A stretch of DNA of 64,000 nucleotides, taken from NCBI RefSeq assembly GCF_000315625.1, contig NW_005434542.1:12495-76494 (forward strand). The letters are read 5' to 3'. The position numbers and the translations under genes were made by a program. The stretch is from Guillardia theta CCMP2712. Taxonomy: Eukaryota > Protista > Cryptophyta. Below are positions 3,150-49,266 of the stretch, piece by piece. Positions within the stretch are counted from its first letter, which is position 1, and every line of letters begins with the position of its first letter. The notes beneath the pieces are model-generated. The model searched no databases, was not told the origin of the DNA, and saw nothing but the letters and a program-made list of their open reading frames with translations.

Positions 3150-3535
3150 GAAAAGGGGGCTACCCCTCACCCCCTATCACAGAGTTTCAAACTGGTTCAA
3201 AGGTGGGTAGTTGAGGGTGCTCCATACCCACCCCACCCCCCAACGAAAGTCAAACGGAGGGGTTCTCGGAAGTCGAAGTTCCGACCAGTTTGGCCCTCGT
3301 TATGTACCATATAAACGCTGCAATATTAAGTTGGTACCACAGATACTTCTAAAATTCGTACTTTTACTTTGGTTTGGCGTGGTGAGGTGTCCAAGCAACA
3401 AAATTCAAATCACCCTACCCCTCTTTGGCCCTGCGCAGCAACGATTTTCCTAAGAGCGAGTCACCCTCCCACACGCCTTCTCAAAGTAGGGTACTCCCAC
3501 ATGGCATGAAATGAAGGGACCCCACAGGCCCTTCG
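3150..3535. repeat. C-rich CCCTACCC-motif tract
   Basis: ctacccctcacccc (~3160), cccaccccaccccc (~3227), caccctaccc (3411); abuts island B. Confidence 0.45.
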
Positions 3536-3564
3536 AAAAAAAAAAAATCTTGCCAATTTTTCCT

Positions 3565-4175
3565 ATGAGCGCCCGGCCGGAAAAGCAACGCGGGCCCGGG
3601 GGCCGGGGGGGGCGCACGTCGGACGCGGCCGCCCACCGCCGGGGCCCGGGGACGCCGGGGATGACTCAGTGATCGGACTGAGACAGTCGGACCGGAAGTG
3701 ATACCATGATACGAAGGCGCTGAAAACTCCCTGACCGTGCTCTGCCGCCTCGGATTTCAGTCCCTTCTTCAAATATTCTTTCATCTCAGATACTAATTTA
3801 ATTTTCCTCTCACGACAGTGCGGCCTGGCGCCGCAGGCTCGCCCAGAATCTTGAACTGATCACCGTGGGTGGCAGCCCCGGCATAGGCTAGGCTATCGGA
3901 TAGCCCCGCTCACAGAGCCGCTGGCCGGGCAGTGGCGACTCGGACCTTCAACGGTTCGGCCCCGGGCCGCGCGGCCCGCCGCCGCACCGGCGGCGGGTGA
4001 CTCAGCGCCCGCGACGCCGTCCGATCCGATCCGAGCGACGTTGACGGTGCCAGAGCTACAGTTGAGGCACTGAGTCAAGTGGGCCGTCTAGCCACAGTCA
4101 CGGTGGCACGGTGACTGTCAGTGTGCGGCTACTGAGCCGAATCACGAGTCTGAGTGCCACGACTCGGAGGCAGCA
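3565..4175. promoter_or_regulatory. GC-rich palindromic-word island B, upstream of the SPP gene
   Basis: Shares ttcaacggttc (3947 vs 816) and the AGTCAC...GTGACT hairpin (4094-4118 vs 888-911) with island A, and tgataccatg (3699 vs 50131) with island F. Confidence 0.6.
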
Positions 4176-4850
4176 GCAGTAGTGTAGATAAGTAAATTCT
4201 AGTACGAAGAAGCGTGATTTTCAGCTTTGAGTGAAGACGGCGAGGGAGGACAGCAAGGAAAGCTACTCCTGGAATACCCCCACTCACTTCCATGCCTTGA
4301 AAGACACCTGGTTTAGAGGCTCCCCGTGTTTTAAGCGCCATGCAGGCGATAGCCGCTGCTTGCCTCGCCCCTCCCTCGCTCCCTCGCTCCCCCGCTCCCT
4401 CCCCCTCTCGCCCTCTCCTTCATTTTCTCCTCCTAGTCTCTGTTGCTGACACCCCCATCGTTGCCCTTTTCTTCTTCCTTCGATGCTCTCTGCTGCACCA
4501 GCTCTTTTCCAATTTCTTTTCACCCAAGTTTTCTCTTGGTTGCGCAATTAACTGTATTCCCTTTTGGCATGAAATCTTCACATTTGAACCGTTTTCAACT
4601 CGATTGCATTCCTGCATCAAATAGATCATCTTCTCATTGATCTTCTTGTTTTAACCCTGTTGGGCGATTCGTAGAAACCTCTTGTGTTGGGTATTTTTAT
4701 TATCGTCCAGTGCTGCTTTCGTTGATCTGCAAACTTGTTTTGTGTTTGCTTTTACAATTTGATAGAATCCTGACAATCACACAGAGAAATATCTTCCTAT
4801 GTCGTCGCGATGCCGGTAGATGGAATTCGTCAGATTCGGTTTTTTTGTAG

Positions 4851-10190: not shown

Positions 10191-10218
10191 AGCTCGTAGC
10201 AGAGATATTGATTTCTCG

Positions 10219-11590
10219 TTAAACGTAGCTGGTGGCTGAGACGATATTCTTCTGCCATTCGAGCACGTCGCATCGAGTTAGCAGCAGCACCACCAGCTTC
10301 TTGTGCTTCGCGTGCAGCATGTCCACCACCACAGGGTCCGTAGCAAGGTTTCTCAGAGCTGAAGCAGCATACTCCAATGAGCTCGCCGACGCTGTTCCAT
10401 CCTGCAGCAAATTTGCTAGGCCATTGATAACGTTGCTGTAGGGGACGATGAATCGCTTGTTCTCCCGCTCAACGGTGAGGCTCCAGAGAGCTGCTGCAGC
10501 AATCTCCCGCCCCTGCAGCTCGTCCTCGCCCAGCAGAGCCGCGAGTCCCTCGAGGATGCCGGGCTGGCGGCAGAGGTCTTGCTTGATGAGGTTGGTGATG
10601 GTGCCGTCGCCCAGGCTCTTCCTCGCACTCTCGACTGAGTCCACCCGCATCTTCTCTCCTCGGCTCTGACTCTGAGCGCTCAGCCGCCAGACTATCCTTC
10701 CCATCATCTCCTTGGTCTCCCTCTCCCCGTGAAGCAGCAGGTCAGCGATGGTGGGTAGAAACGTGTCGCCCTCAGGGCTGCGGTGGCTCAGCACCTTGAG
10801 CTTGCTCTCGTCATCACAAAAGAGAGTCCAGAGCAAGGCGGCAGCTGCGACCTCAACGTCAGCTGAGCGAGAAAGCAGAAGCACTCTCAGTGTCTCCATG
10901 AGCAATTCGTCATCCAGAAACTCTCTCTTGAATTCATCCGAAAACGTGGCGAAGTTTGTCAGGACGTGAGCCGCATGGTTTTGAACACTGTGATGCTCAT
11001 GAGAAAGACTGTCGACAACAGCTTTCATCAGTCCTGGATAGTACAGCATGATCTCAATAAAACTTCCATGTTTCTTTGGAAGCCAATCGTACGAGCTGAG
11101 AAGTAGAGTGAGAGGAGAGGAAAGACAGCTTTCCGGCACCTTCGAATGTTTTGCCCGTCCCTGGGTTGCAGGTTGAAGTTATGCAGGAGCAGACAAGTCG
11201 CATTACGCAAGATCCGCATGACAGAGATGGGAATCAAGTTGAGATGTCTGAGGTGAGGTCAGGGCCGGGGAGTGATACGTTGCAGAATCAAGAAACCTTG
11301 ACATCTCTTGAGAATTTCCTTGTCTTGTCGATTGCAGATACTGTTTGATCTCTTCCTGCTAGCAGTGTCAAATTGATCGAGCAACAACATCTCTTACGTT
11401 TGACTGCGAAGTAGCGTCCTCGAAAAGCTGCATCATTCCCTCCAACATCCCCATCTCAATCAGCTGCCTCCGCATCAGACGACAACGAGCAGTCAGCGTG
11501 GACCTCTATCAGCTCTTCTTCGAGGATCTCTTCAGTCGCATCAGCAAGCATGGCGATCGCCTGCGCATTCTCAGCTCCCGCTCCTCTCAT
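10219..11590 (-). CDS. Armadillo (ARM)-repeat protein
   Basis: Repeats such as AAHVLTNFA, AAAALLWTL, AAAALWSLTV and AASALRNLAT in ORF 10219-11139. Upstream exons run to ATG 11590 (MRGAGAENAQAIAML). Confidence 0.75.
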
Positions 11591-11694
11591 CGCTCCGCGT
11601 CACTTTGCACTTGGTCGACACATCGGGAGCTTTGAGACTGAGCAAGCATGTCAGCTGCGCTAGATGAGAACGCGACCTTCGGACCGGCTGGGGA

Positions 11695-12830
11695 TCAGCT
11701 TAACGCTTGAGGACCATGCAAGCGCTTTCGCTGGATCTTCAGCAGCTCTGACGCACAAGCTCGAGTCAGGTCTGCCAGCGGCGAGGGAGGAAGCAACCTC
11801 GGCCGACATCGCTTCGTGCCCACAACCTCGTTGGTCCTCCCCCTCTGAAGCCGCTCATGCTCCTGACAGAGAAACCTCAGCTGGGAGCCAGCAAGACCAA
11901 CCGACATGCCTTGTAGTCGGAAATGAACTCCCCGAAAGTCGGGAGGTCCTGCGGGGGTTTACGAGTGTGTAGGCTGAGAGGCAAGCACCGTGAGAGAGTG
12001 AGTGCCGTCTTCTGCCATCATCACGATGAGCGTGCAAGAAAGCTAGCCAACAGTCCACCTATCGCAGTTGTCGGCTCAGAGTCTTGGTTGGGGTCTTCAT
12101 CTATCCTTATGAACTTCTTTGAGACTGCCGTCCAGTCAACTTTGACCCCAAGCGCAACCTCATCACCTTTTTGCTTGGGAGCAGAGTCGGGAGGAGGCTC
12201 GTCGAACAAGGTCCTGTATCCTTTAGGAACAGCTTTACCCCCGTAGTTCTTCACCTGCATCCAAACATTCAGCACGCACCTCCCCTTCTCCTCCTCAAAC
12301 TGATCGCTTACCAGTTTCTCGTGCTCTGCTGGAATAAATCCGTCGTCTTTCTTCCACAAGAACAAGTCTTGTTTGGACGACTTCTTGGGTAGAGTCGCAT
12401 TCCACCACTCGTCAACGGCACTCACTGGCAACAAGAGTGAGGAGAGCAATCCAAGGGCTCTATCACCTTGCTCTGTGGAGGATTGATGGTTCATGAGTAA
12501 GGTTGGCCCATCTTCAGGAGCATTCTCTTGTACAATCGATGTTCTGGTTCTGAGGAGTCTCTGACCCGAGGGCTGACATAGATTGAAGCCATCTCAACAT
12601 CCAAAGAAGACCAACACTGATCTATATCACCTTGGAGCTCTTCTGCGAATCTGAGTGTTTCTTTCCACCAGAAGATGTTTTTTCCGATGCTTTCTAATGG
12701 CCAACCGAGTCAAGAGAGAAAGAAAATCTCGTTTCTCATGATTCGATGCTGCTGGTACCTTGGCTCGTTCTTCTTCCCGCTCTCTACGCCGAAGCTCCAT
12801 CTTCCAGGCGAAGTCGATGGCCTCAGTCAT
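11695..12830 (-). CDS. Hypothetical multi-exon protein
   Basis: Protein-like ORFs 12627-12830, 12021-12494 and 11695-11907 joined by short GT-AG introns. No domain recognised; start uncertain. Confidence 0.5.
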
Positions 12831-13061
12831 TCTTGTTGCGACACGGGCAACTTCAGTCGTCGGTCATCAGCATCAATGCTGGGAAAGCCTTGCTTCAACG
12901 AACTTCAGTATCTGCTAGACGACAACTTCCTTGACTGCAATGATGACCACTCACACCATCTTGCCTCTTTACTCCAAGTTAAGTTTAGCCTCCATGTCAT
13001 ATTTGGAAACGCAGCTCTCAAAGATCGATGATTTAGCTGCGCGGCGTGACCAGGGCTCAAA

Positions 13062-13200
13062 TTCATCTCGACATGTCATCTTCTCGCACTGACTATCATC
13101 AATCTCATTCAGATCAACATGTCATCTTCTCATCAATCTCATTCATATCGACATGTCATCTTCTCATCAATCTCATTCATATCGACATGTCATCTTCGCT
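13062..13200. repeat. ~34-bp tandem repeat (atgtcatcttctcatcaatctcattcatatcgac) x~4
   Basis: Direct repeats visible upstream of the WD40 gene. Confidence 0.75.
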
Positions 13201-13466
13201 CACTGCACGACACTAGTACTGATCTCATCTCCTGCTCATTCCTATCATGTCATTTTACCAACCGAACATGCGTAGCTACTGCTACGATAAGTGAGTAACT
13301 TATCACTCAACTACTTTCAACCAACTCGCCTCACCAGATGAACTAGAGAAATAAGGGGGCATCGATACTGACATTATTGGTGTATATCCTGAACAATTTC
13401 TCCTGTCCCACAGAGTGAGCTTCAGACGCATCAGGTCAGCGACCATGTTGGAAGGAGAGGAGTTGC

Positions 13467-15500
13467 TTGCAAGGACATGCAGACACAGTGAGAGCTGTCT
13501 CGTGGTCGGAGGACGGAAGCAAGATAGCCTCTGGCTCCGTTGACAACACTGTGAGAGTGTGGGAGGCAAGCAGTGGAAAGGAGATCGGCTGCTTCAAGGG
13601 GCATGCTGGAGACGTTTACAGCGTATGCTGGTCGAGAGATGGCAAGGGGATTGTCTCTGGATCTCTGGACAAATCTGCCAGAATATGGGAAACAAGCAGC
13701 GGGAAGGAGGTTGGTTGTTTCTCAGCTCACTCGTACCCAGTGTGGGGAGTCTCGTGGTCGGGAGATGGGAGGATGATCGCGACGGGGTCAGGGGACAACA
13801 CTGTGAGGGTGTGGGAAGCAGACAGCAGGAGAGAGGTCGTGAGCTTAAAAGGACATTGTTGTAGTGTGAGAAGTGTTTCGTGGTCGAGAGATGGGAGGAG
13901 GATCGTCTCAGGATCATGGGACAACACTGTGAGGGTGTGGGACCCAACCAGCGGGAAAGAGGTGCATTGCCTCAAAGGGCATGCAGGAGATGTGTGGAGT
14001 GTCTCGTGGTCGGAGGACGGAAGCAAGATAGCCTCTGGCTCCGTTGACAACACTGTGAGAGTGTGGGAGGCAAGCAGTGGAAAGGAGATCGGCTGCTTCA
14101 AGGGGCACACCAAAGGCGTTTACAGCGTATGCTGGTCGAGAGATGGCGGCCAAATCGTTTCAGGATCCGGCGATGGCTTTGTCAGGGTGTGGGAAGCAAG
14201 CAGCGGGAAGGAGATGGAATGCTTGACTGGACATACGAGAGGAGTGTGGGGGGTTTCGTGGTCGGGAGATGGGAGGATGATCGCGACGGGGTCAGGGGAC
14301 AACACTGTGAGGGTGTGGGAAGCAGACAGTGCGTACTGATCGGATACAAGAGCTGACTCTCGGACGAAACCATCATGTTGTAGCAAGAGCGGGCGATAAA
14401 ACGGTTAGCAAACGTTATTACATACTCACTGCCACGATCAAGGCAACTGAGCTGTCTGGAGTAATTGCTCAAAGACAGAAGGGGCAGAAGGCTTCAATGT
14501 CATACGTTTTGGAAGCAAATTGTTTTTCTTGGTGTGGACGTAGGTACTGTCGACATGAATGAAATGTTACGCAACGCAATGAAGAAAGATGTATGCGGTG
14601 TTTTCTCTTGTAAGAACCGAGCAAGCAATGTGAGAATCGAAATTCCCAGAAAGCTTCTGCATTTTCTCACGAGAGATCTGCTGAGTTTGCAAGTTATCCA
14701 CCCACTGCTTGCATTGATGATGCATTGAAGAGAGTAAGCAGCAATAAGAAACAGCAAGCATCACTGTATGCAGCTGCAGAGATCATTTTCTGTGCTAAGA
14801 AGGGGAAGGACGCCTTCGATATTGACCTCCCATGATCGGCAATCTCTACATTTCTGTTATTACGACTGTTCCTGCAGTTTCTTCACACGATATTCAAACC
14901 TGCAACCTCGATCAATACAAACGCAATCAACTTCGTGAAACTTACTCCTGAAATTGACACTTCTCGTAAGCATGCCTCTCTGTTTCGATGGAGAACATCC
15001 GTCATTATCCCAATCTGCAGCCTCAAACCGCATTTTGTATACCTTCTGTGCATTTCCATGGCAGGAAGTAGTTGGCGTATCTACATTTTGGCAAAAACAT
15101 CAGCGAGTATCATTGCAAGATCGCATTTTACCTGCACTTGTTCAAGGGGATGAGCAAGTGCGAGCAATAGTCGCGATACCTGTTCAAGTTTTAGCAAGAT
15201 CAGGGGTAAGATGATACGGTAGCTGCATACGCAGGATCAATCTTATTCTTCGCGCACTCTCCTTTGTTGGGTGGTACTGTATTCAAACAAGTCATTGAAG
15301 CAAACAGTATCAGCGAACACAACATGGCTACGCCCAGTGGACACTACATGTTGCATAACTTCCAGCAGTCAAGAGGAATCGAGTATCAAGAATTACATGA
15401 GACAGATCGCATGCGAGCTTCAAGGATTTCTTGTGATGATGCATAACTACAGTCTCCCTGCCATCACCATACGACCCCGTCCAGTCCCTCACCTCTAACG
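13467..15500 (+). CDS. WD40 protein: seven 42-aa highly conserved repeats in one exon (13467-14328), then a spliced C-terminal region of unknown function
   Basis: GH...V.SV.WS.DG..I.SGS.D.TVRVWE repeats at 126-bp period. GTGCGT donor at 14329 and tgtag acceptor ~14382 continue the frame. Both gene ends uncertain. Confidence 0.8.
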
Positions 15501-15544
15501 TATTCGCCGCCGCCACCCATCTTCGATGTCGCCGCTGCTGTCTA

Positions 15545-16040
15545 AAATGGTTTTAGATTTACAACCAATTCACGTAGGAATCGTATCAATGTATTACCCG
15601 ATCGTATGGAAAAATAAACAATGTTTTATTAATTATCAAAGAATTATCAGTTAGCTCAAGACATTGTACCATTAAATTCTATTACTATAATATGGATAAA
15701 AATATTTTTAGAAGTTCAGACGCTAGCTATGTTGCCTGGTGCTGCTTGGCTAAACGTTCGTCACAATCCACCCTACCCTTGTTCGTGCAAGCTCTGAATA
15801 TATCCACCCCTACTATCATGTGCTTTCACCCACCCCTTTCTATAGGTCCGATTTCTAGCAAGGAAACCGGACCCCCTGCCCTACATTCAAAGTGGAGAGT
15901 TCTAGAGCGACAGGACCCCACCCCTCCGTCTGATAATGATACCCCCACCCCAGATTTTGAAGTCAAGTTGGTATTAGAGACAATACCATGACCCCTCCCT
16001 GGCTGGATCTGATTGAGCGGTACCCCCACCCCCATGTTAT
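15545..16040. repeat. AT-rich segment plus CCCTACC/CCCCACCC tract (same class as the other intergenic modules)
   Basis: ccaccctaccc (15768), ccacccctac (15803), acccccacccc (15941, 16022). Confidence 0.4.
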
Positions 16041-16506
16041 CAGTCCCCCCAGGCGGCCGGCATGCTTCGAGGAGGGAGGGAGGGGAAGGAGGAGGAGAAG
16101 AAGAAGGTGCCATGACAAGAACAACAAACAGAGCAACGCTGCATGCTGGTATCGTGCAGGACCAGTCGAGCCATGCATGAATCTCTCCGATCATCCTGAC
16201 TGAACGCTTAGGCGAGGATGGAGAGATCTGTAAAGAGAGATCAAGCAGTGAGATGTATCGTAGCCAGCAAGATCAAGCAAGCAGACGATCCTGTAACAGT
16301 TCGATAGTACTAACTTGATTGTGATGACTTTGATGGGAGTGATTACGGATCTGACTTCTGACTCCCCGACGACACGTGTTCTGCTGGAAATTTTGAGGAA
16401 ATTCTATGCCCTCATTGCATGTCGATCTCACAACATCACAGCTCATTTCCCTTGACTGGTTTTCGTTGCTTGACATTTGATTCAGGTGTCGTTGTTCGCT
16501 GCAAAC

Positions 16507-19500
16507 ATGAAATCTCTGCATTTATCTGGAAAACTCGCCTTCCTTACCACTTTCGTTCTCCTTTCCCCAACTGGCGCGCTCAGAGTTCAATCCAACCTCG
16601 CATTTTCTCCGTCGCTTCTCATCTCGAAGAACTCCCATGCGCTTGCCCTGTCTTCCGTCCAAGGACGAAGGGTTGTCACGCTCCTACGAGATTCGAAGGA
16701 TGGAAGAAAATTTGACAACCTCAACGATCGAGCCAACAAGCTGTCGGAGGAGGCGAAGAAGGTCAGTGATTGAACCAGTTCCTTGCTACGTCCTCACGAC
16801 TGCTGGCAGTACGAGAACTCAGACGTCTCCGACCTGGCTGAGGTAAGAGCAGCACCGGGAGATTCGTATGAACAAGGATTTCTTGTCGGAGGCTGGGACG
16901 GGAGGGGGCGGATGGATGGGATGGAATGAGATAGCGAATGGTGATGAGAGGGAGGGAGAAATCTCACAGGGAGCTCGTCAGGGTCTGCAAGACGACGTGA
17001 CAGCATTCAAGTCGAAGCTGCAGGAGGCGCAGAAGAAGGCAGGGGATCGAAAGAGCAAGGCGAGCTAGGAGGTTGTGTTTGCTTCAGCTGACTGGCTGGC
17101 AGGGCTTCCTTACAGCGGGAGCGGCTGCTCTCTTGGTGGGACTTGCAGCCTGGGCCTTTGGGCCGAGAAGGTGAAGGCAGAAGAGAAGTGGAGGAGAAGG
17201 ACGATCTTGAGGGAAGCGATCGAGAGCGTGTCGGGCTGTGAGGGAGGAAGGAGGGAGGAAGGAGGGAGGAACACAGGGAGGAACGGAGGGAGGAAGGAGG
17301 AGGCACAAAGAAAAATAGAGGTGAAGGAGATGGGCAGGGCTGGAGCTGAGATGAAGACGTTTGCGTTCAACAACGCGCCTCAGGTGATCTGCCTTGAAGG
17401 TTTCGACGCCCTCACATGCTGCGCTTCAGCAGGAGACTCTTGTTGGGCCAACCCTCCCTGATGACACGTTCATCTCTGCTTCCAGTACGACCCCTCCTCT
17501 GTCATACCTGTCCACTCCTCTCTCCCTCACTCCCTGCTAGCTTGGCGAACGATGTTGGACCCTGTTAAATCTGTCCGTGCAGGAGGGTCACGGGAAGTGA
17601 TAAAACAAGGCTGCGTACGGGGGGAAGTCGGATGTTTGGTCCCGGGGCATGACTTGNNNNNNNNNNNNNNNNNNNNNNNNNNNNNNNNNNNNNNNNNNNN
17701 NNNNNNNNNNNNNNNNNNNNNNNNNNNNNNNNNNNNNNNNNNNNNNNNNNNNNNNNTACTACCCTCCGTCCCTACCTCCCTCCTCCTCCCTCCCCTCCCC
17801 TCCCCTCCCTCCCTCCCTACCCTCCCTCCCTCCCTCCCTCCCTCCCTCCCCTCCCCTCCCCTCCCCTCCCTCCCTCCCTCCCTCCCCCAACAGCGTCCCT
17901 GCTCTTGTCTGATGAAGTTATCAGAGTGGGAAGGCGCCAAGAAAGGTTTCGTCTTCAAGACTGGCCCCAAGGTGACCGTGAGGTCTGGCGGCAAGCACGA
18001 GACGTGACAGCTGGGCAGGGGCTGGGCTACTACCTGGACACGGGGTTGTCGCTTGAGGAGCTGGGAGGAAAGAGCGGCGGATTTCACATCCCAACTCCAG
18101 TCACTGTAATATTGTCTCCTGCTCCTCCTCCTGCTCCTCCTCCTCCCCATCCTCCTCCTGACAGTCTATCTAGTCACTCACTGCTCCTCTTCTTATTCTC
18201 GTCAGGTTGCTGTTGGAGTTGTCGGTCTCGGTGTGACAGGGAAGTTTCTCCTCAAGAACCGCGGCACTCGTAAGCCGAACTTCTGCTCCTCCTTTCCTTG
18301 TTCAACTCATGCACTTCCTATTTCTCTTCTGCCTTGTTCCTCCTTCCCTGCTCCCTCGCCCTCTTTTTGATTCTTCTCCTTCCCTTCTTTGACATCGCTC
18401 CGTTACCGCTTCTTTTCCTCCTCTTCCTCTCCTGCCCCCCCTCCTCCTCCTTTCTTTCTCCCCTTGCCCATCCCCTCCCACTCACCTTCCTCCACTCACG
18501 TTCTCATAGTCACGCTCGCTGCCATGGCGGCAAAAGCGGCCATGAAGGCTCGAAGCGCCTCGTCCCCCATGAACGTGGGAGGAACTGCAGGGGGGGCAGC
18601 ATCAGCTGCGGCAGCTGGAGCTTCAGCTGGAGCTAAGGCAGCAGAAGCGTATCAGACCGCAGCAGCGAGTGCAGAGACGTTCGCAGGTTCAGCCCTCCTC
18701 CCTCCTCCCTCCTCCCTCCTCCCTCCTCCCTCCTCCCTCCTCCCTCATCTTCTCCCTCTCTCGCTTCTTCGCCTCCATCGCTCTTGTTGCACCTTTCTCA
18801 CCCACAGTTCCCAGGAAAGGATCCTGCGACCATGAAAGCAGCTGAGCTCAAGAAGGCGATTCAGGAGCTTGGAGGCAACCCGTCAGGTTTCTTCTTCGTC
18901 TCCTCCTCCTCTTGTTCCTCCTCATCCTCCTCTTCCTCCTGCTCCTGCTCATCCCCCTGCTCCCCCTGCCCCTCTTCTTGCTTCTCCTCCTTCTTGTGTC
19001 GTTAAATCACCCCCTCGTTCATGATCGTCTCTTGCTGACGCTCTTCGTGCAGGTCTGGTGGAGAAATCAGAGCTCGTCGCTCTTTTCCGCGAGCTTCAGT
19101 CGTCTCCGAGGACAGTGACGACAAGGTTGGAGAAAATCCTCCCGCTCCTCCCTCCTCACTTTTCTTCTCCTTCCCTCCTTCCCTCCCTGTCTCCCTACTT
19201 TCTCATTGCCCCTTCCCGTTCTCTCCTCGCCTTTCCTGCTCACCCCCACACTCCCGTCTTCGTCTTTCGTGTCCCCTGCTGTGCTGTCCTCTGTCCCCCC
19301 TCTCCTTATCATTCCTCCCTCTCTTCTTCTCTCCTTCTCGTCCTTGCTCCTCCTGGCGATCTTCCAGTTCTTGGTCGTTCCTTGTTCTCTTACCATGTTC
19401 GATTGCAGGAAGTACAACCCTGCTGAGGAGGACATGTCCTCTGCTGCTGCTGCTGCCGATTTCGATCCTACCAAGGTTCTCCCTCATATCCCTTCCTTCT

Positions 19501-38439: not shown

Positions 38440-39275
38440 ATCTTTGCTCGGAGCCGGGGAATTCGGAACGGGGGCGTGCGCGGGGGATTTTGCGGAAAGA
38501 TATCGGCGACTAACTGTCGGACTATTCCGTTGTAGTTTATAGGGCTCCGAAACGCTCCGATTTCAGTTTACAACATGTCGACAAGGTGCCGTGATTTTCG
38601 GAATTGTTTGAAACTCTTTTAAGAGTGGGCCGGAGTAGAACCTCAGTAGACAGCCCGTCGCCCCGGCCGGGCCCGGCCGGGCCCTCAGCGGCCCCTTTTA
38701 CAGGGGCTGCCCGCCCATCACTTTTGTACCAGAATTCAATGTCGGTCCTCAGTTCAAGTAGGTTTGTACCTGGTATTTGTACCATTACTTTCATTTGGTA
38801 CAGTTACTCCTAGAAATGTCTATAAAGATTAGTATCAGTTATCTGGCCTGTCAGTAGATTGGTACTAGGACTGAGCGGTGGAATTTGACCCCTTTGCAAT
38901 CATACAGCAGATTGAGGTTCCTTGCCCTCCGGAACCAAAAATGGTACCAAGTCTGAATAATTTATTTGAAAATTTCAAATTTTGGACATGCAACTAGACT
39001 ACAGTTCAATTTCAGTTTATTTTTTGTTCCTTAGATTATTACTACAATTGGAGTCCCGGAAAATCTGAAGCCGAGTCGAACCCCACCCTACCCTAGTCAT
39101 GTTACACCACCCACCCCACCCTCCATAACCCTTCCGTCCAACAGGTACGTGAGCGCTCGGGTTCTATATTCGGCCTTTTTGCCTAGATCAGCCCTTCATG
39201 ACCTGAGGGGTTGAACGGCAGTCAGGGGTAGGGTACATAGGGTGATGGGGGTGGTGATGGTCATGGTGGGGCACG
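38440..39275. promoter_or_regulatory. Composite module E: GC island (38440-38720), AT-rich spacer, CCCTACCC/GGGTAGGG tract (39075-39275)
   Basis: ccccggccgggcccggccgggccc palindrome at ~38661; ccccaccctaccctag at 39081; ggggtagggtac at ~39225. Confidence 0.5.
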
Positions 39276-39460
39276 TAAAATGAAGTATTTCGGTAGCTCT
39301 GTAGTAAAGTACGAAAAGCCTTCAAGAAGTAACTGTTGGCAATGATGACAGGGTCAGCAATTCGCATTACAACTACTCTCCCTCTTCACCCGCCTCCACC
39401 ACAATCATCTCGTCCTCTACCTCCTTGTCCTGCTCCCCTCCGATTCTTGTGCCAACATCC

Positions 39461-39550
39461 TCCTCCTGTACCTCCTGTACCTCCTGTACCTCCTGTACCT
39501 CCTGTACCTCCTGTACCTCCTGTACCTCCTGTACCTCCTGTACCTCCTCC
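39461..39550. repeat. (CCTCCTGTA)n 9-mer tandem repeat
   Basis: ~9 perfect units. Confidence 0.9.
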
Positions 39551-40407: not shown

Positions 40408-43400
40408 CTAGTCATCAGGAGCGAGGTTAAGGACTTTGTCCGTGTTCCTGCCAGTACAGATCAGCGCACATGGAGCTGCAGCAGCAGCAAAAGCGTTACC
40501 ATGCCAAGAACACTTGCTTCTCCTCATGGTAGACGAAGCACATCTTATCGTTGATGAGATCAGCTCCTGCTGCTCGCTGCAAGCAAGCATGTCCTCTGAT
40601 GCACATCCACACCTCGATCGGATATTGCATCATCATCCCCAGCCCTCCCGTCTGTGCAGTGCCGTTGTTCACCAGCGCCGTAAGCTCCATCCACCCCCTG
40701 CTATCGATGCACTCGGCGTACTGGAGGAACTCGGAAGCTGCCCAGGGCTGTGGGATGTTCCAGCTGACGGCAGCGAGGGAGGCGTTGAAGGAGCAGAGGA
40801 GGGAGCCGTTGCGGTAGCTGGCGGCGAAGCCCTCGGAGCAGCTCTCGCAGGCGACCCCCTCGTACCCCAGGAAGCAATCGCAGGCTCCGCTGCCGCTCAG
40901 GCACTTCCCCCTGCTGTTGCAGACGCGGTCGAGAGAGGCGATGGGGCAGCTGAGAGAGGTTGTCTGACAGTCGGCGATGCAACAGCCTTCGTTCAGCCCG
41001 CAAACTTCTCCGACCTCGCACACGCCGTTGCCGCACACTCCGCTCCGCTCAACGGTAGCTGAGGAAGACAGGATCAGCGAGCTGTCGGCCAGAAGCTGTC
41101 GTGCTAGGAGAGCTGAGAAGGGGTACGACCCGTTCATGACCCCCACGCTCAGTGAAACTGTCACGTCCACGGCATCCGAGAGAAGGCGACGAGCAGCGGG
41201 GGAGGAGGAGGCGACGACCTGCAAGACCTGGAAGGAGGAGGAGTTGATGAGGAGGGAGGAGGAGAGACTCGACGTGATGTTCTGCACCAGCGCCCCGAGC
41301 TTGGCGAACTCCAGCACGTCCGAGCTCGAGGTCACTGGCACGCTGAAGGAAAGGAGGGCCCCGCAGCTGCTCCCGTCCCCATCGCAGACCCCGCACTCGT
41401 CTACCGCTCCTCTCTCGCAGCAGTAGCCCGACGAGTCCAGCTGCGAGGAGGAGCAGCAGATCCCCGACAGGTCCACCAACGTGCTCGTCCCGTTGCACAC
41501 GCCGCAGGCGTCCACCCACCCCTCACAGCATCGGCCGTCTGCCCCGAGCTCCTTCTCACAGCACTTCCCCTCCGCATCCACCACCCCCTCGCAGCACTTG
41601 CCATCGTGGTCATAGAGACCGGTGCTGCATGCCCTCTGGTCGGCGCTGCACTTTGCCCCAGTCCATCCCTCCTGGCACTCGCATTTGAGGTCGACGCTGC
41701 AAGTGCCGTGACCGCTACAGTCTACCTCCTCGCACTGCCGCCCGCACGCCGGGACCTCACAGTAGCCGGACGTCCGGGGCTTCGGCAAGCTCGCGCAGAG
41801 CTCGTCAGACACAACACTTCCTTCCGTCACTGAGTAGCACGACGCTGCTCGCGTCTTCGTCTCCAGCCCGCACCCTCCCGAGCATGTGCTCCACTCGCCG
41901 ACGAACCAGGCGAAGCGAGCGCAGTCGACCTTGTTGCACGTCTGAAGCACCGCAGGTTTCGCCCGGAGCGACAGGCAGGCCGCATCCTCCACCTCCTCCT
42001 TCGTCGCCACCCTCACGCACCTCACCGTCCGGTTCTGGTACCCTCCTCCGCACGTGGCATTGCACTGCTGCCAGGCGTCGACACTCCAGCTGAAGTTTGC
42101 GGGGGCATCGCAGGAGAATCCTTGGCAGCTTGCCTGATCCGCCGGCCTCTCATCGAGCTGGCAGAGCGACCCAAGAACAGGCAGGCCCGAGCTGGACATG
42201 CATGTCACCTGTCTCGTCATGCTGCCGGGCCCGCACGTGCTGCTGCAGGAGGACCAGGCGGTCGCTCGCCACTGGTACGACTGGCATGCGATCATGCCGC
42301 AAGTCTGCCATCCTGCTGGCCTCGTGCTGGGGTCGCAGCTGCTGTCCTCCTGCACGACGCCGTTGCGGTCGACGCACTCGACGCTCCTGGTCTGGCTCCC
42401 TCCCCCGCACGTCGCCGAGCACGCGCCCCAGGCTCCAGGCCGCCAGCCAAAGGAGCCGCAGGGCACGTCGAAGCAAGCCTGCGAGGACGGGAGCGAAGGG
42501 AGCTGCAGGGCGAGGCAGTGAGCATGCGGGAGAAGCTCGGCAGGCCTGCGGACGGGGGCCATGAAGTCACGGTTGATCTTAGTGCAGTCCTGCACAGGCT
42601 TGAAGTTGCTCCGGTAGTTCACCGTCCCCGTGCGGTACTGGCGGCAGTTGTTCTCGTCCAAGAAGCAGGGGCTCAGCCTACCCCCCCCATCCACGAAGAG
42701 GGAGAGGTCCCACTGGCTGCACTTCTGTTGCCTCCCGTCCTTGCTCAGGGGGTGCTGACTGCAGTTCACTGCCATGGTGCAGAAACGCGGGTCCGGGTAT
42801 TTCTCCATGGAGACCGTCGGCTGCTCCCAGCGTTCGTCCCTCATGCAGGACACAGTCCGGGTGCGGTAGCCCAGCCCACATGAGGAGGAGCAGGAGGACC
42901 AGGAGGAGGCGAGCAGGGCGTAGTGGGGGCGGATGGTGAAGGGCTCGCTGTAGTTGGTTCCGGCAGCTCCTGAGATGGTGAGGAAGTACTTGTCCGACTC
43001 CCCAGGCACCCTCGGCACGAGAACCTCCAGCATGCCCGTGTTGGGGGTCGCGAGCGCGAGCAGGGCGACGCGCTGCTCCTTGCCGCCGCAGTCTGTCAAG
43101 TGCCACAGCGACACCTGCACAAACTGTCTCGCTCCGGCCCCAGCAGCGTCCCACCTGACCATCCTCCTCTCTCCCTCCCCCCACACGTCCCCTGCCCGGG
43201 GGGAGGTAACAGCTGGAGGACCGTAGAAGCCCTGCTGAAGTAGGAGGACGGAGGGGCGGGAGGGGAGGCTCAGGTTGACGCAAGTCTGCTGCATCCTCGT
43301 CCTCTCACTGAGGAAGGGCAGCAGCGCCCGGTACTTGTGCGCCTCCTCCCGCGGCTGCCCCGTGTACTCCAGCGCCCCCCAACTGCCATACTGCGTCGGG

Positions 43401-46400
43401 TTCCCGACGCTGGAGAAGTGCATCCAGGGGGAGCGGGGGGAGAGGAGGCCGGAGGCGTTGAGGCGAGAGAGGAGGGAGCGGTAGATGTCGCCCATGCGCG
43501 GGGAGCGATGGGCCTCTATGAACTTCCTGGTGAGGGAGGCGGTGAAGGAGCCGGAGGAGATGGCGCTCGCTTCCACCAGTCCCGGTCCAGCCTCGTAGAA
43601 CCCGACAGGGATGTTGTACTGGTCGGCGATGTTCTTGTGCTCCTGGTAGGACGCGATGACGTCATCAACACTCTTCTCGCACTCGTCCAAGATCGCCGCG
43701 ACCGTCATCGTCAGCGCCTGCGTCTTCCTGTCCGAGCCCAGCCCCCGGCAGTCCAGGTAGCCAGTGGTGGCCAGCAAGTCCGTCGCCCTCCACGTCTCGT
43801 TGAACTGCAGCATCGTCGTGGTCGTCCTCGGGCTGATCGCCCACGTGCTCAGCACACGGACCACGCGCGACGGCTCCTCCTTGAACTCTTCCCTCCACAT
43901 GTCCCAGATCTGCCTGCTCCTCAGCGCGTTGTACCTCCACCTGGCCTCGTTCTTGTCCGAGCTCAGCCCCAGCTCTAGCCCTCTCTGCTCGCAGTAGGCT
44001 CCTGACTTGTGGCCGCTCGTCCAGACCTCGTTGCTGTGCTCCACGTAGACTTTCACGTCCTTCCTTAGCGTCTCCCGCACCAGCCTCGCCATCTGCCGCA
44101 CGTAGTCGTCGCTGGCAGTGTGGGGGATGCAGAACCAGGGGGAGGAGCGGAGGATGTTGGAAACGCTGATCATGTGCTCCAGCGCCATCCCAGCGTCCTT
44201 GAGCTTGTTCACGTTGGCCTGCGACGCGAAGTCCGTCCTTGTCCTGTCCTTCCACTCCTGCACAGTTGCGTCGTTGGTCCCCTGCCAGTCCATGAAGCGC
44301 AGGATGCCGAAGGGAGCGATGTCTCTGAGGAACCAGGGATGGAACTCAGAATGCGAGCCCAGCGACGCGAGCCCAGGAGCGAGGATGCGGATGTTTCTGA
44401 TGGGGTCACGAGGGTCGCTCTCCTCGATCTTCAGGTACATCCCGTTGTCCCCGCAGTACGCCTGGAACGACTCTGCGCAGGTCCAGTCGACGGAGGGGCG
44501 GAAGACTACCTCCATCCTGTTCTTGGACCTCGTGACCACCTTGGAGTCGAACCCGAAGGTCATCGACCCCTTCCCCTCGTACTCCACGGTGAAGGTGCCC
44601 GTAGGCGCATGCTGCAGTACGTTCCTCATCAGCAGCTTTCCCAGCGCCTGCCTTGGCCCTAGCCGCACGGGCCATCCCTTGCCGTCCACGTAGATCGGCT
44701 CTCCCGTATCCCACGCTCCAGGGCCCATGTCATCCGCTCTGTGCGCGAACCACTCGCTGCTCTGCTTCATCGCGTCGGTGAATATCCACTGGGTACTCCA
44801 GTATGCAGCTCCTCCAAGGTTCAGACCGACTCCCGTCCTCCCATCGCTCTCGTTCTTCAGGACCTCGCATGCCCTGCCCTCCGCCCCCACCCAGCACAGG
44901 CAGCTGCCGTGGTGGCACGTCCCGTGCTGGCATGCCGGCAAGCAGCCGCACTCGCCGGGCCCGATGCACTCGACGCCGTCGGGGCAGTCACAGTCCCACT
45001 CGCAACCCCCAGCTCCCGCCCGCCAGCCCTTGTCGCAGATGCACGAGGACTGGTCAGCGCTGCACCTGCCGTGACCGTTGCAGGAGCAGTCAAACTCGCA
45101 GTGGTCGCCGGCGTATCCCGGGTAGCAGCTGCAGACATCAAGATCGATTGCCTCCCCGTTGCCGTTGCATGTGTCGTTGAAGAGACTGCAGGTCACCCCG
45201 AAGAACCCATCCTCGCAGTGACACCCGAAGTAGCGCGTTATCTCGTCCTCCGTCCTCAAGAGATCGCAGCTCCCCTGGTCGAACGTGCACTTGTACCCGC
45301 AGTCCACCACGTCCATGTACCGGATGACGCTACAGTCGCTCCCCTCATACCCGTAGTAGCAGGCGCAGGCACCTGACGACAGACACTCTCCGTGAGAGGA
45401 GCAGTTGTTGGGACAGCCGCCGTACGGCCTGATGATGCAGTTGAACTCGTCCTCCATGTGCTGCAGGAGCGCCTGGTACTTGTACGCGAACGCCCTGTTC
45501 TGGTCCGTGGCCTCCAGCAGACCCCAGCTGCCGTACTTGCTGGGCCTTCCAGCAGAGCTGAAGTGCATCTTGATCCCGCGCATACCGATGTTGAGCATGT
45601 CCTTGTAGTACATCTGGTACATCAGCCCCATCCTCTCGTCCCTGTTCGCCAGGATCCCGAGGTCCTTGGCTGATCCGTCGCCCACCAGACTCTGACCTGA
45701 CTCGTACAGCACCAGCGTCTTGTTGTAGCGTGACGCGATGCGGCCATGCTCGACGAGCAAGGCCCTGCCCTCGGCGATGGACTTGGGGATGGTCTCTCGG
45801 AAGAGGATGTCAAGGGTGAGGGAGGCGTTCTTGGGGTCGTAACCACCGAAGTAGGGAGCGATCCCGACGACGTCGATGTCCTTGTAAGCGTCTTGGCACG
45901 AGAGCAGCTTGTCAGTCACGATCGTCCAGACGGCCTGAGTGGAGGCGACAACAATGACACGATCGGCTTCCGCTCCGAACACTTGCTTCCAGATCCTGGC
46001 GATCTGCGCTGTCCTGTAGCCGATGTAGCAGAAGCGTGCCTCGTTCGCATCTCCTCCGTACCATCCTCCCTGCTGCAACCCGAGCTGCAGTCCCATGAGC
46101 TGGGCGTACTTCCCTCCTTCGAACCCCGTGTGCCATGCCTCGTTGGTCCACTCCAGGTACACCTGAGCCGCGTGAGAGGGAGTGCGAGGAGAGGCTCTTC
46201 CTTACCTTGACGTCCTTGCGGAGGGTCGACAGCACCAGCCCCGCCATCTCCCGCACGAACTCGTCGTCGGCATTGTACGGGACGGTGAACCAGGGGTCAG
46301 CCCCGATCTCATTGGCCAGCCGCACCATGAGCTCGATCGGAACTCCGTCCCTCCAGATCTTGACCGTCGAGTTCCCCGTCGTCCCGTCCGGTTCCATGTT

Positions 46401-49266
46401 GTACTGAATGTCGCCAGCGTACGTTCGGTCGTTCACTTTCGTCCTGTGCGCCCAGCTGCCCGACTGCTGCACGTTTGCTCTCGACCAATCCATGAAGCGG
46501 AGGGCCCGGTAGTGCTCGATGCTCTGGAGGTACCAGGGGTGGAAGGGGAAGCTCTTGGCCCTGTGCTCGAATCCGGGCATGATGACGCGGATGTTGCGGA
46601 TGGGGTCGGCCGGGTTCGTTCGCTCGATGACGAGGAAGAAGCCGTTGTTGAAGACGGTAGACGGCTGAACCTCTACTTCCATCCTCCCGACTCCTCTCCT
46701 CACGCTCTTGATGTCCGACATGATCGGCGACAGGATCCCGTCGCCGTCGTAGGTCACCACGTACACCCCAGCAGGGGCATGCCCGTACAAGTCACGGATC
46801 ATCATCGTGCCGACCCTCTGGTTGGGCTTCAGGCGAGTGGGGTAGTCGTTGTCTCCCAGCTGCAGCAGAGTCAGGGCCCAGCAGCAGCTCAGCAGGGAGC
46901 CAGCTCAGACATCACTCACCTCGATCGGGATGCCGGTGGCCCACGTGAAGGAGGTGAAGTCCTGCGGGATCCAGTCCCTGCTGGCCTTGAACACGTCGAC
47001 GAACGTCCACTCGGTTGACCAGTCGCTGATCCCTCCCACGTTCATGCCGATGTCATGCTCGCACTGGTTCGGACGCGGAACTACCTCCGTGCAGCTCGCG
47101 CCAGCAAATCCCCTCCAGCACTCGCACGCCCCCTGCCAGCAAGTGCCGTGCACGCAGGCCGGGGAGCAGGGGACTTCTGCCTCCTGGTGGAGGTCAGCTG
47201 ACGTGAAGGGCTCGATGAGAGGGACGCCGTTGATGTAGTTCTTGACTGCCCGCAGCTTGGGGGAGTCAGACAAACTCTCCATGAGGCCGTTGTTAGCGCA
47301 GTCCTTCCCTCCCGTCGGGCAGATCCCCGCGGGCTTGTAGAGCTCGGAGGTCACGAAGACGCCTCCTCCTATCCTCCGCCAGCGCTCGATGAAGTCCATG
47401 TAGATCCCCGTCATCCGAGGGTGCCGACTGGCATTGATCAGCTTCTGCTCCAGCTGAAGCTCGAGAGCAGCGTTCGCCGTCGCTGTCACCAGCGTGGTGG
47501 AGGCAGTGAGCGGCCCGTCCAGCACGCCATAGCCGTAGGTAGTCTCGCAAGGAAACACGTCGCGCGATATGCACATCTGGATGTTGTACACAGCAGCTCT
47601 GTGGCCGAAGGACCTTGCGTTGACCCACGAGCCGCCTCTGTACGCGAGGACCGGAACGTCCGGCCTCCCGGTCTTGATCAGGTAAATGGCGCGAAACCTC
47701 TGAATCAGCGTGTTGAGTTTCTGCTCGGAGTGCATGGAGTTTTCCCTCATCAGGTCAAGAATCTCGTTCACTGTGATGTTGGGATGCTTCAGGGGGAAGT
47801 CGAAGTCTTGGAACCATTCCCCCGTCGGGTCGTTGACAACGTCGGTCGTCTCCATCCCAAACTTCGCGCTGACTCCGAACGCGTCCACGAACTGAAGGTC
47901 AGAGCCGAAGTGGTCGGTGATCTCGGACACGAATTTGGTCGTGCTCACGACCCGCACCAGTCGAGGGACTGACATGTTGGACGCCCGCAGGTCATTGAAA
48001 GTCTTCGTCCATGCTCGGAACACGGCAAGTGACTTGGTTTTGTCCCAGTTGGCGTATCCTGTCCCCGAGCTCCACTCCACGTACACCTGGAGCGAGGGAT
48101 CGAGAGTCGTCCCCACCAGAGTGGCGAACTTGGAGTTGTAGTCGTCAAACACATCTGTGCTGCTGACTGACTCGGGAGAAGGAGGAGGCATGCAGAACCA
48201 GGGAGAGGCATGAAGGGTGTTTGCAAGCTCGACCATGAGCTCGATCGCAACCCCTGGATCCACGACTGTCTTGTCCGCCGCCCCTGTCAGGACGTCGTCA
48301 CGAGCCTTCCGCCATTGCTGGTGCCCCTGAGGCCCCTCGGGCAGAGCTCGGTGCTTCCAGAGCCGAGGAGCGTTGTTGGCCGGCCCGTCGTCACCGGGCC
48401 TGACAGTCTCCTGCCAGAACCCGAACCGGATAACCTGTAGTCCCCGCAGAGCTTCCAAGAACACGCTGGTGAAAGTGCTGGTGGAGAGGAAGTCCGGGCC
48501 ATCCAGAGGGAGGATGCGGATGTTGCGAACCGGGTTTGTCTCGTTGGTGCGGACGATGCGGACCTCAACCCCGATCGCGGGGCTGACTGAGATGTAAATG
48601 TCTCGAGCATCGGAGTACTTGTCGTTGGGGACCCTCGGTATCACAGAAGCGTCTCCTCCGAACTGTATCTCCCCCTCGCCATCATACAGCACCACGTAGT
48701 TCCCAGCAGGGGTGTGGTTCCCGTATCGCCCGATGAAGGCTACGGCCTGGTCGAACTCCCCGGCATTCTTGTAGTACAACTTGGAAGGATAGGTCGGGCA
48801 GGTGGCTCCCCCGTCGATTCCTCCTTCCCCGCAAGCAGTTGTGTACGGCGGGGTCGAAGGAGTGTTGAAGCGATAAGTGATCATGTTACACACCAACTTC
48901 TTCGAGCCGTCAAGCCTGCAGGAGCTGTAGTACCTGTAGACCCACGGCATCAGGCGTGAAGGGGAGAGGACTGGAAGGGGAGGACAGGAGGGGAGGGGAG
49001 CTAGAGGAGGGCAGAGCAGAGCAGAGCAGAGCAGAGCAGAGCAGAGCAGAGCAGAGCAGATTTCTTTCATACCAGGGCGAGACGTGCATGAAGAGATCTC
49101 GAAATACTCCAACGTCCACGGTGGAGAAATCAGGCCAGCCAGATGCCGACAAGGCAAAGCTGGGCTCGATGGGAGGAAGGTTTGCTCCGAGGGGACCCGG
49201 CTGAGCTGATATGCATGGAAATACGACGAGGAAAAGGAATAACATGCATTGTTTCGGCATTGTCAT
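40408..49266 (-). CDS. Giant secreted protein (~2,800 aa): three clan GH-A glycoside hydrolase-like modules, EGF repeats, Ig-like domain, ~5 TSP1 repeats, DxCGVC repeats
   Basis: Signal MTMPKQCMLFLFLVVFPCISA. Modules 2 and 3 have GxNxGG..WSTxW.F.D..K, NxxDP/DPIRNIR, LRFMDW, PWFxxP, VYxExxNExW, YExG and YGSWGxLE; module 1 is a diverged copy (NPVRNIR, IRFGFWQ, PWFCMP). EGF C..HG.C; TSP1 W..CS.TCG.G.QTR.V.C; RRLL motif. About four short introns. Confidence 0.85.

Follow-up and report, generated by a model that had tools for sequence, protein, structure and literature searches.

Within the 64,000-nucleotide window (the whole stretch of Guillardia theta DNA that we analyzed), a gene on the minus strand (49266..40496) contains four exons and three introns, with 2,842 codons and no internal stop. 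Coding exon 1 (49073..49266, minus strand) begins at the ATG at 49266 and encodes a signal-peptide-like N-terminus and the start of a first large module; exon 2 (46920..48933) encodes the remainder of module 1, a single EGF-like domain, and roughly 50 residues at the start of module 2; exon 3 (46206..46859) encodes the middle of module 2, including a beta-sandwich insert and the motifs RFMDW and PWF; and exon 4 (40496..46162), which is 5,667 nt long including the stop codon, encodes the end of module 2 through the C-terminus. The introns are 139, 60, and 43 nt long, and all three have GT-AG boundaries. An initial annotation of this DNA proposed about four introns, whereas we found three coding introns; its 5.6-kb exon and its high GC3 were both borne out (GC3 is 82.6% and stays high as far as the stop codon). 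An in-frame ATG at 49308, 14 codons upstream of the modelled ATG, could be the true start of the gene.

In run X1, we identified an RNA contig (5,349 nt) that extends unbroken from 49227 to 43637 and is spliced exactly at all three predicted introns, including the exon 2-exon 3 joint (46859/46920) and the exon 3-exon 4 joint (46160-46204, cut +2); it includes exon 1 sequence, and DNA run X11 retains the introns that the X1 contig lacks. This contig carries module 1, module 2, an EGF array, and most of module 3, which agrees with the earlier proposal of a single chain and, over the 5′ 5.3 kb, argues against separate transcripts. The 3′ 3.1 kb, beyond 43637, is linked to the rest solely by the continuous high-GC3 reading frame. 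A deposited partial protein (GUITHDRAFT_80080; 1,844 aa) has 100% identity to the gene product. One nuclear G. theta gene encodes a secreted multidomain protein of 2,842 residues.

Combining Pfam searches with inspection of the sequence, we reproduced the domain order of the initial annotation from the signal peptide to the C-terminal domain (all features on the minus strand). Residues 1–21 (49204..49266) form a putative signal peptide, recognized by eye from MTMPKQ, a hydrophobic core, and an ISA/QP boundary. Module 1 (residues 22–650; 47178..49203, spanning intron 1) and module 2 (residues 687–1196; 45437..47069, spanning introns 2 and 3) are separated by a single EGF-like domain (47070..47177) that matches Pfam EGF_TEN in exon 2 and has its EGF core motif at residue 668. 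An array of about six EGF repeats (residues 1197–1390; 44855..45436), identified by EGF_TEN and EGF_Teneurin matches and by motifs, leads to module 3 (residues 1391–1912; 43289..44854). Behind module 3 lies an Ig-like domain (residues 1931–2035; 42920..43234) that resembles Kre9_KNH (PF10342, E = 7e-4), below the curated cut-off in the G. theta protein but above it in orthologues.

The remainder of the protein begins with five TSP1 repeats (41741..42919), with an insert after the first (TSP1_ADAMTS, E = 1e-44, in five stretches; TSP_1, E = 3.5e-14); together with the Pfam matches to the EGF arrays, these scores indicate that both repeat types are genuine, as had been proposed. An EGF-like domain follows (41639..41740; EGF_Teneurin and EGF_2, exon-4 residues 1477–1506), and then a Cys-rich stretch with CC pairs and two DxCGVCxG motifs (41360..41638), read from the sequence and without a family match. 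A Ser-rich stretch with two RRLL/RQLL motifs (41045..41359), likewise delimited by eye, had no match in Pfam or the ESM Atlas. A second Cys-rich stretch (40790..41044) includes a laminin-type EGF (EGF_laminin, E = 1.3e-3, a weak match; motif at residue 2715). The C-terminal ~97 residues (40499..40789) showed no detectable conservation in the orthologues compared, and the tail has no hydrophobic anchor, in agreement with the earlier statement that a C-terminal transmembrane segment is absent.

The three modules had no sequence match in Pfam, NCBIfam, PHROG, or the PDB, and a profile did not change this for Pfam, NCBIfam, or the PDB. We also compared them by predicted structure. AlphaFold modelled module 3 with a pLDDT of 88.9 and a pTM of 0.91, and every top match of this model in a PDB structure search belonged to clan GH-A (Z = 25.0 to GH51, 21.9 to GH79, and 20.8 to GH39, at ~12% identity). 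The module 1 model (pLDDT 72.9) aligned to GH51 structure 2vrk with Z = 17.1. Modules 2 and 3 are 36% identical over ~530 aligned positions (E = 5e-106). The models of modules 1 and 3 support the assignment of the barrels, made earlier from motifs, to a clan GH-A type (beta/alpha)8 fold, which in each model is interrupted by a beta-sandwich behind strand 1.

The nearest solved folds are GH51 alpha-L-arabinofuranosidases (2vrk, 1pz2), GH79 heparanase/beta-glucuronidase (5bwi, 5l77), and GH39 (1w91), which share with the modules the (beta/alpha)8 barrel, an Asn-Glu at strand 4, and a Glu at strand 7 (Z = 20–25 over ~300 residues), albeit at only 9–14% identity. In GH51, GH79, and GH39, the beta-sandwich comes after the barrel, whereas in the G. 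theta modules it is inserted after strand 1. PslG (4zn2), a hydrolase of a bacterial exopolysaccharide cluster, is also a GH-A structural match (Z = 18.9), although it is unrelated in sequence. An interrupted barrel has a precedent in GH148 EngU, in which an inserted beta-sandwich splits a GH-A barrel that was recognized through weak similarity only (PMC5725463). The EngU insert is a CBM4 located between the acid/base and the nucleophile (PMC5725463); the G. theta insert instead precedes the acid/base and has no CBM4 match.

In the module 3 model, Asn-Glu ends strand 4 and Glu ends strand 7, and four residues (E272, N275, E276, and E421) are invariant among 51 aligned family members. Module 2 has N961-E962 (TNEAW) and E1108 (LYESG), and module 3 has N1665-E1666 (SNEVW) and E1811 (FYEAG); based on alignment and model, the Asn-Glu would supply the putative acid/base and the strand-7 Glu the putative nucleophile, and modules 2 and 3 are apparently active. 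Module 1 has RFGFW in place of RFMDW, its Asn-Glu is deleted, and its nucleophile Glu is replaced by Arg. The NE and YE.G motifs are kept in all complete modules 2 and 3 among the orthologues checked, and module 1 lacks both in every one of them. As judged from these alignments and the predicted fold, module 1 is a conserved pseudo-enzyme in which the barrel is kept and both catalytic motifs are gone. The catalytic Glu positions reported in the initial annotation thus stand for modules 2 and 3 and fail for module 1; because module 1 has lost its catalytic motifs, only two of the three modules could be enzymes, and the idea of a multi-enzyme could apply to those two at most.

The core order (dead barrel, EGF, barrel, EGF array, barrel, Ig) is present in several eukaryotic supergroups. 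Its holders are volvocine algae, Mesostigma, dinoflagellates, Cafeteria, and many metagenomic eukaryotes, and they include Gonium GPECTOR_53g111, Chlamydomonas incerta HXX76_000652, Cafeteria FNF31_02421, and Tetrabaena “Tenascin-X,” as well as proteins of Volvox, Pleodorina, and Durusdinium; eukaryotic proteins bearing the core are deposited as hypothetical. Triplication, initially described for this species, is therefore no trait peculiar to it. Because these lineages share the core, the architecture is common in databases; none of the papers searched describes it, so the earlier remark that no description was known holds for those papers, although the architecture itself is not unique.

Orthologues agree with the G. 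theta protein in which catalytic residues are present and which are missing, and 16 of the 21 compared by BLAST retain the Ig-like domain behind module 3, but their tails diverge. Volvocine algae have REJ domains and one metagenomic form has TNFR-type repeats; TSP1 arrays occur in the tails of the G. theta protein and of the relatives L001, P0137, and P0138, and the Cys-rich CGVC stretch is common to G. theta, P0137, and P0138. Only the TSP1/Cys-rich tail appears, from these comparisons, to be lineage-restricted. This tail resembles ADAMTS, papilin, and thrombospondin-type proteins in its ADAMTS-subtype TSP1 arrays followed by CGVCxGDGSSC-like Cys-rich motifs; however, the G. theta protein has no metalloprotease, disintegrin, or spacer, and its enzymatic parts are glycosidase-like barrels.

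Outside eukaryotes, the barrel (~500 residues) belongs to a large, uncharacterized, mainly bacterial family. It is represented in at least 589 bacterial species, with Planctomycetota predominant. Of the candidates scored, 493 matched at E ≤ 1e-3; bacterial homologues of module 3 reach E = 1e-96, and ESM Atlas clusters align to the barrel at TM 0.87–0.89. Automatic cluster names for these relatives include “cellulose-binding protein,” the label that the initial annotation had given for a poorly characterized bacterial family. In phylogenetic trees, the eukaryotic sequences of each module type group as a separate clade, and the combined set is nested within bacterial diversity, with a sister group that is mostly Planctomycetota. 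Support was 99–100 for the module 2 clade, 96–99 for the module 3 clade, and 99–100 for modules 2 and 3 jointly (two independent bacterial samples); in the tree including module 1, a single branch (support 82) sets all bacteria to one side. This topology is consistent with the horizontal transfer and internal duplication proposed earlier, and it suggests that the barrel was acquired once, long ago, from a bacterium and was then duplicated twice within the protein. Because the trees are unrooted, were built by quick searches, and have module 1 as a long branch, the transfer direction and the single origin are likely rather than proven. Judging from the separate clades of the three barrel types, the triplication is old.

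Two bacterial members (P0037 and P0006) sit within exopolysaccharide-synthesis loci, one of which encodes ATP-sulfurylase/APS kinase, a sulfotransferase, glycosyltransferases, and a flippase. Among 124 neighboring ORFs at 38 loci, GT2, Wzx-type flippases, Wzy, Poly_export, and GT1 were among the commonest, as counted without a formal background, and this survey showed no polysaccharide-utilization-type context; four of the six contexts inspected individually were uninformative. Some bacterial members thus resemble PslG in lying within Wzx/Wzy-type, partly sulfation-equipped synthesis loci, although the link holds for a subset of members and its application to eukaryotes is an extrapolation.

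The explanation that we favor overall, with a probability of roughly 0.6, is that G. theta secretes a three-barrel protein whose modules 2 and 3 remodel the cell's own extracellular glycan. We infer this matrix-remodelling role from the fold, the conserved residues, the bacterial gene context, and the accessory domains. The two intact barrels, as glycosidases or transglycosylases of the retaining type, would target a polysaccharide in the extracellular coat or mucilage that the cell itself produces, one that may be acidic or sulfated; module 1 would bind glycan without catalysis; and the EGF, Ig, TSP1, and Cys-rich regions would space the enzyme and tether it in the matrix. The connection to a self-made polysaccharide is drawn from the subset of bacterial members in exopolysaccharide-synthesis loci.

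Alternatively, though with clearly lower probability, the two intact barrels may pass segments of glycan between chains and so cross-link the matrix polysaccharides rather than hydrolyze them. The retaining mechanism of clan GH-A enzymes would permit such transfer, and in fungal walls GH17 and GH72 enzymes transfer glycan segments. Polymer bridging would be well served by two active barrels that rigid EGF arrays keep apart, together with a barrel that only binds, and the structural matches include a GH17 glucanosyltransferase (rank 49). However, known transglycosylases show no specific similarity to the modules, the best matches being hydrolases of GH51, GH79, and GH39, and hydrolysis and transfer are indistinguishable from sequence alone.

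An unlikely role is that of a digestive or offensive enzyme against foreign polysaccharide (bacterial exopolysaccharide, biofilm, or prey walls) in feeding or surface clearing. The heterotrophic bacterivore Cafeteria has an orthologue, and some bacterial members are secreted and carry T9SS tails, dockerins, CBM9, or PA14; however, the scaffold consists of matrix-type domains, no utilization-type context was seen around bacterial members at the loci surveyed, and the eukaryotes that carry the protein are mostly phototrophs that build a rich matrix themselves (volvocine algae, Mesostigma, Symbiodiniaceae, and G. theta). Because phototrophs are most of the holders, prey-wall digestion, which the initial annotation had entertained, is improbable as a conserved role. 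Less probable still is a purely structural or adhesive protein with three lectin-like binding barrels and no enzyme. The persistence of the module 1 barrel without catalytic residues, the “cellulose-binding” database names, and the adhesion-like remainder of the protein fit this explanation, but no complete module 2 or 3, even from distant lineages, has lost the Asn-Glu or the nucleophile Glu, and their decay in module 1 alone indicates that catalysis is under selection in the other two modules. Finally, an artefact, whether through bacterial contamination, chimeric assembly, or the merging of neighboring genes into one model, can be practically dismissed: the deposited model is partial and module relatives are mostly bacterial, but spliceosomal introns, two of them inside module 2, argue against contamination and are spliced out of an RNA contig spanning modules 1–3, independent runs carry the same DNA, and collinear orthologues occur in one metagenomic relative and many other eukaryotes.

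On the preferred reading, G. theta would remodel its own extracellular glycan with two apparently active barrels and one that may only bind. The three-barrel core, as yet unstudied, is widespread in algae and protists.

A gene on the minus strand of the window (positions 49266..40496) is predicted to encode a secreted multidomain protein of 2,842 amino acids, in which a signal-like N-terminus is followed by module 1, an EGF domain, module 2, an EGF array, module 3, an Ig-like domain, five TSP1 repeats, and a Cys-rich tail; the three modules are paralogous barrels of ~500 residues. The 8,529-nt coding sequence joins four open stretches in frame (49266-49073, 48933-46920, 46859-46206, and 46162-40496), without internal stops, across introns of 139, 60, and 43 nt, all three of which are bounded by GT-AG. 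The GC3 of the gene is 82.6%, compared with 53.7% for the window; high GC3 persists to the stop codon, and nothing continues the frame downstream of it. Two microsatellites lie at this locus: a CTCTG-type repeat occupies most of intron 1 (48972-49068), and a GGT-rich repeat with a period of 6 or 9 lies downstream of the gene (~39200-39500, minus strand).

RNA and DNA contigs from public sequencing runs were aligned to this gene model. The RNA contig from run X1 (5,349 nt) maps to 49227-49070, 48930-46920, 46859-46204, and 46160-43637, and these aligned blocks indicate that all three predicted introns are spliced out; the small offsets from the predicted joints reflect alignment ambiguity and give an identical mRNA. 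DNA contigs from run X11 retain introns 2 and 3 and break within intron 1. Thus, a single spliced RNA covers the first two modules, the EGF array, and the greater part of module 3, and the remaining 3.1 kb at the 3' end are tied to the rest by the uninterrupted reading frame only. Raw RNA-Seq reads from run X19 contributed two reads at the sampled depth. Because a second in-frame ATG is present at 49308, upstream of the modeled start by 14 codons and preceded at a distance of two codons by a TAA stop, we left the start codon at either ATG; RNA contig sequence extends to at least 49400, beyond both candidates. From either ATG, the N-terminus is hydrophobic and was judged by eye to be a putative signal peptide, and no other hydrophobic stretch was seen in the protein, including at its C-terminus. 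Over the query, the sequence is 100% identical to GUITHDRAFT_80080 (“hypothetical protein, partial”; Guillardia theta CCMP2712; 1,844 aa). The gene is therefore already public, as a truncated, unannotated model of 1,844 aa compared to the 2,842-aa product supported here.

AlphaFold modeling of module 3 with 50 homologues predicted a (beta/alpha)8 barrel (pLDDT 88.9, pTM 0.91) with a beta-sandwich inserted after strand 1 (module residues 62-158). All leading Foldseek matches to this model were clan GH-A enzymes, and a structure search independent of Foldseek aligned it to GH51 2vrk (Z 25.0, rmsd 3.5 A, 312 aligned residues, 12% identity), GH79 5bwi (Z 21.9), and GH39 1w91 (Z 20.8). The model of module 1, built with 15 orthologues (pLDDT 72.9), matched the same series of folds, with a Z of 17.1. 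Based on these models, modules 3 and 1 are predicted to adopt the clan GH-A (beta/alpha)8 fold, and module 2 would share it based on its 36% identity to module 3 over ~530 aligned positions. The identity of module 1 to modules 2 and 3 is just 27-30% over ~250 residues.

An Asn-Glu acid/base pair at the end of strand 4 and a nucleophile Glu at the end of strand 7 are the positions that define clan GH-A. Across 51 members of the barrel family, E272, N275, E276, and E421 are invariant; in the module 3 model, N275-E276 lie just after the strand formed by residues 269-273, and E421 lies within the strand formed by residues 417-424. The predicted acid/base pair corresponds to N961-E962 in module 2 and N1665-E1666 in module 3, and the predicted nucleophile corresponds to E1108 and E1811, respectively. 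In module 1, the Asn-Glu motif is deleted and Arg replaces the nucleophile Glu. The absence of both catalytic positions follows from comparison of its motifs VYVEWSSG and AYRGG with VY(L/V)E(W/H)(T/S)NE and (L/F)YE(S/A)G in modules 2 and 3; module 1 also has RFGFW where the other modules have RFMDW.

This architecture is not peculiar to the G. theta genome: a search for long proteins containing the module, together with the family HMM, identified the same layout widely among eukaryotes. The search returned many giant eukaryotic proteins in which modules occur together with EGF domains, including proteins from the volvocine algae Gonium, Chlamydomonas (two species), Volvox (three species), Pleodorina, Astrephomene, and Tetrabaena (whose orthologue is automatically named ‘Tenascin-X’), as well as from Mesostigma, the dinoflagellate Durusdinium, the heterotrophic stramenopile Cafeteria, an MMETSP transcript, and many metagenomic eukaryotes. 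Based on the family HMM, all longer models have a partial, low-scoring first module followed by two full modules; shorter or partial orthologue models display the layout only in part. Among 17 orthologues, NE and YE.G are kept in every module 2 and in every complete module 3 (partial gene models truncate three of the module 3 rows), and no module 1 has an intact catalytic pair. On one metagenomic contig (L001), there is a collinear orthologue with 37-52% identity, TSP1 tail included. Within residues 52-286 of the Cafeteria roenbergensis protein (P0236; FNF31_02421), there is an N-terminal 2OG-Fe(II) oxygenase and GlcNAc-transferase (PF11397) region, which reflects either a genuine fusion or an error in the gene model. 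A partial two-barrel homologue (P0234) is filed under the snail Batillaria attramentaria and represents a metazoan gene or a contaminant.

Pfam identified five TSP1 repeats in the G. theta protein (TSP1_ADAMTS, E 1e-44, 151 bits against a cut-off of 23.8, five stretches; TSP_1, 53 bits against 21.6) and EGF-like domains of several types (EGF_Teneurin, 45.2 bits against 24.3; EGF_2, 22.9 bits against 22.1), along with weak matches to a Kre9_KNH Ig-like domain after module 3 and to a laminin-type EGF close to the C-terminus. The Ig domain is conserved after module 3 in 16 of the 21 orthologues compared. Besides G. theta, only the L001 orthologue and the orthologues P0137 and P0138 have the TSP1 repeats and Cys-rich tail, in place of which volvocine forms carry REJ domains. 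The C-terminal 303 residues had no match in the ESM Atlas, and their conservation stops at close relatives. The TSP1 repeats match an ADAMTS model, but we rejected identity as an ADAMTS protease because the protein lacks the protease domain; Pfam matched neither a Reprolysin-type metalloprotease nor a disintegrin-like domain anywhere in it.

The barrel modules had no match in Pfam, NCBIfam, PHROGs, or PDB sequences, whether single sequences or the 51-sequence profile was used; among the 51 family members, no Pfam GH family was matched at E ≤ 1, and neither phmmer nor the profile matched the sequence of a PDB chain. At the sequence level, no numbered CAZy GH family was matched in Pfam, NCBIfam, or PDB, and a recent CAZy family with neither a Pfam model nor a structure may still fit. 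GH148 is a known interrupted GH-A barrel; however, its CBM4 insert sits between the acid/base and the nucleophile, with GH42-like flanks, whereas the insert here precedes the acid/base and matches to CBM4 and GH42 are absent, and we rejected this assignment. Topic searches of the literature, together with searches for nine locus tags, turned up neither a description of the protein or family nor an assay of any member. By its modeled fold and catalytic layout, the barrel protein is a predicted enzyme of clan GH-A type. We regard the family as genuine and conserved but uncharacterised; it also occurs outside this genome, and its predicted mechanism is not without precedent.

Hundreds of bacterial relatives, almost all unnamed, align with 30-39% identity. 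A pattern scan in which each species was represented by one genome placed the barrel in at least 589 species of bacteria; the best 79 of these comprise 35 Planctomycetota, 9 Armatimonadota, 6 Cyanobacteriota (including Acaryochloris marina), 6 Verrucomicrobiota, and others. ESM Atlas clusters with TM scores of 0.87-0.89 bear automatic names such as ‘cellulose-binding protein,’ in agreement with the label given for this family in the initial annotation. One ESM Atlas cluster with the barrel fold is labeled 50% Uroviricota. A link to phages was rejected, as this label was unsupported by PHROG matches or by tblastn matches in 50,697 isolated phage genomes, with none found in either.

We inferred two unrooted trees by quick searches under LG+C20 PMSF, each with its own bacterial sample (115 and 117 rows). 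In these trees, eukaryotic module 2 forms a clade (SH-aLRT 100 and 99), as does eukaryotic module 3 (96 and 99), and both groups join in a single clade (99 and 100). When rooted on a distant bacterium, the sister of this clade is a mostly planctomycete group of 12 tips. In a tree that includes module 1, the three module types each form their own clade, and a branch with support of 82 has all bacteria on one side; the placement of module 1 is tentative because of its long branch. Some bacterial proteins have two tandem full barrels (P0143-P0145, P0147, P0150, P0152, P0157, and P0141), some of them with Calx-beta domains and one of them cyanobacterial. These tandem doubles were rejected as the source of eukaryotic modules 2 and 3, since they are independent duplications, and a plastid or cyanobacterial origin was rejected because cyanobacterial members are remote from the eukaryotic clade. 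The simplest reading would be a single acquisition from a bacterium, followed by two duplications within the gene and the inactivation of module 1; these events would all precede the divergence of, or gene exchange among, the present holders.

Across supergroups, modules 2 and 3 invariably retain the catalytic residues, whereas those of module 1 have decayed. This selective pattern favors an enzymatic role for modules 2 and 3 and a different role for module 1, the simplest being glycan binding. Bacterial gene context provides the sole substrate lead. The locus of one bacterial homologue, P0037 (L003; ENA ERZ21862645, a 7.85-Mb contig; 1-17584), encodes a flippase, GT4, GT2, a CysQ-like phosphatase, an ATP-sulfurylase/APS kinase, a sulfotransferase, and WecG-STAS, and it looks like a sulfated exopolysaccharide locus. 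A relative of this homologue, P0006, adjoins Bac_transf and WecG-STAS. Among 124 ORFs from 38 species, the commonest neighbor families, as raw counts without a background comparison, include GT2 (4), Wzx-type flippases (3), Wzy_C (3), GT1 (2), Poly_export (2), and sulfatases (2). Four of the six bacterial contexts inspected singly offered no functional lead. In part, the bacterial neighborhoods suggest exopolysaccharides that the cell makes itself and that are sometimes sulfated. The eukaryotes that carry the gene are mostly phototrophic and have elaborate extracellular matrices, and domains of matrix type make up the scaffold. Taking the bacterial context, the phototrophic holders, and the matrix-type scaffold together, we favor a role in remodeling the cell’s own extracellular glycan, which may proceed by hydrolysis or transglycosylation.

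A broader joint reading is possible, although we assign it a probability of only about 0.3: the barrel would represent an undescribed GH family with neither a Pfam model nor a structure, present in hundreds of bacterial species, and its eukaryotic branch would be a conserved extracellular enzyme of ancient origin, in which a pseudo-enzyme that only binds and two catalytic barrels form a fixed triad; this enzyme would process a matrix polysaccharide, perhaps sulfated, that distant algae and protists share.

To our knowledge, very little is known about extracellular glycan turnover in cryptophytes, green algae, dinoflagellate symbionts, and heterotrophic flagellates. Orthologues in Chlamydomonas and in relatives of Volvox make the question open to experiment. 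The inactive barrel, strictly conserved next to two that would be live, would be a clean natural case of a pseudo-enzyme kept in one polypeptide. If modules 2 and 3 are active, they would give access to a large part of clan GH-A that lacks annotation and extends across many protists and at least 589 species of bacteria and, in eukaryotes, would constitute a conserved matrix-remodeling enzyme common to cryptophytes, green algae, dinoflagellate symbionts, and a heterotrophic flagellate.
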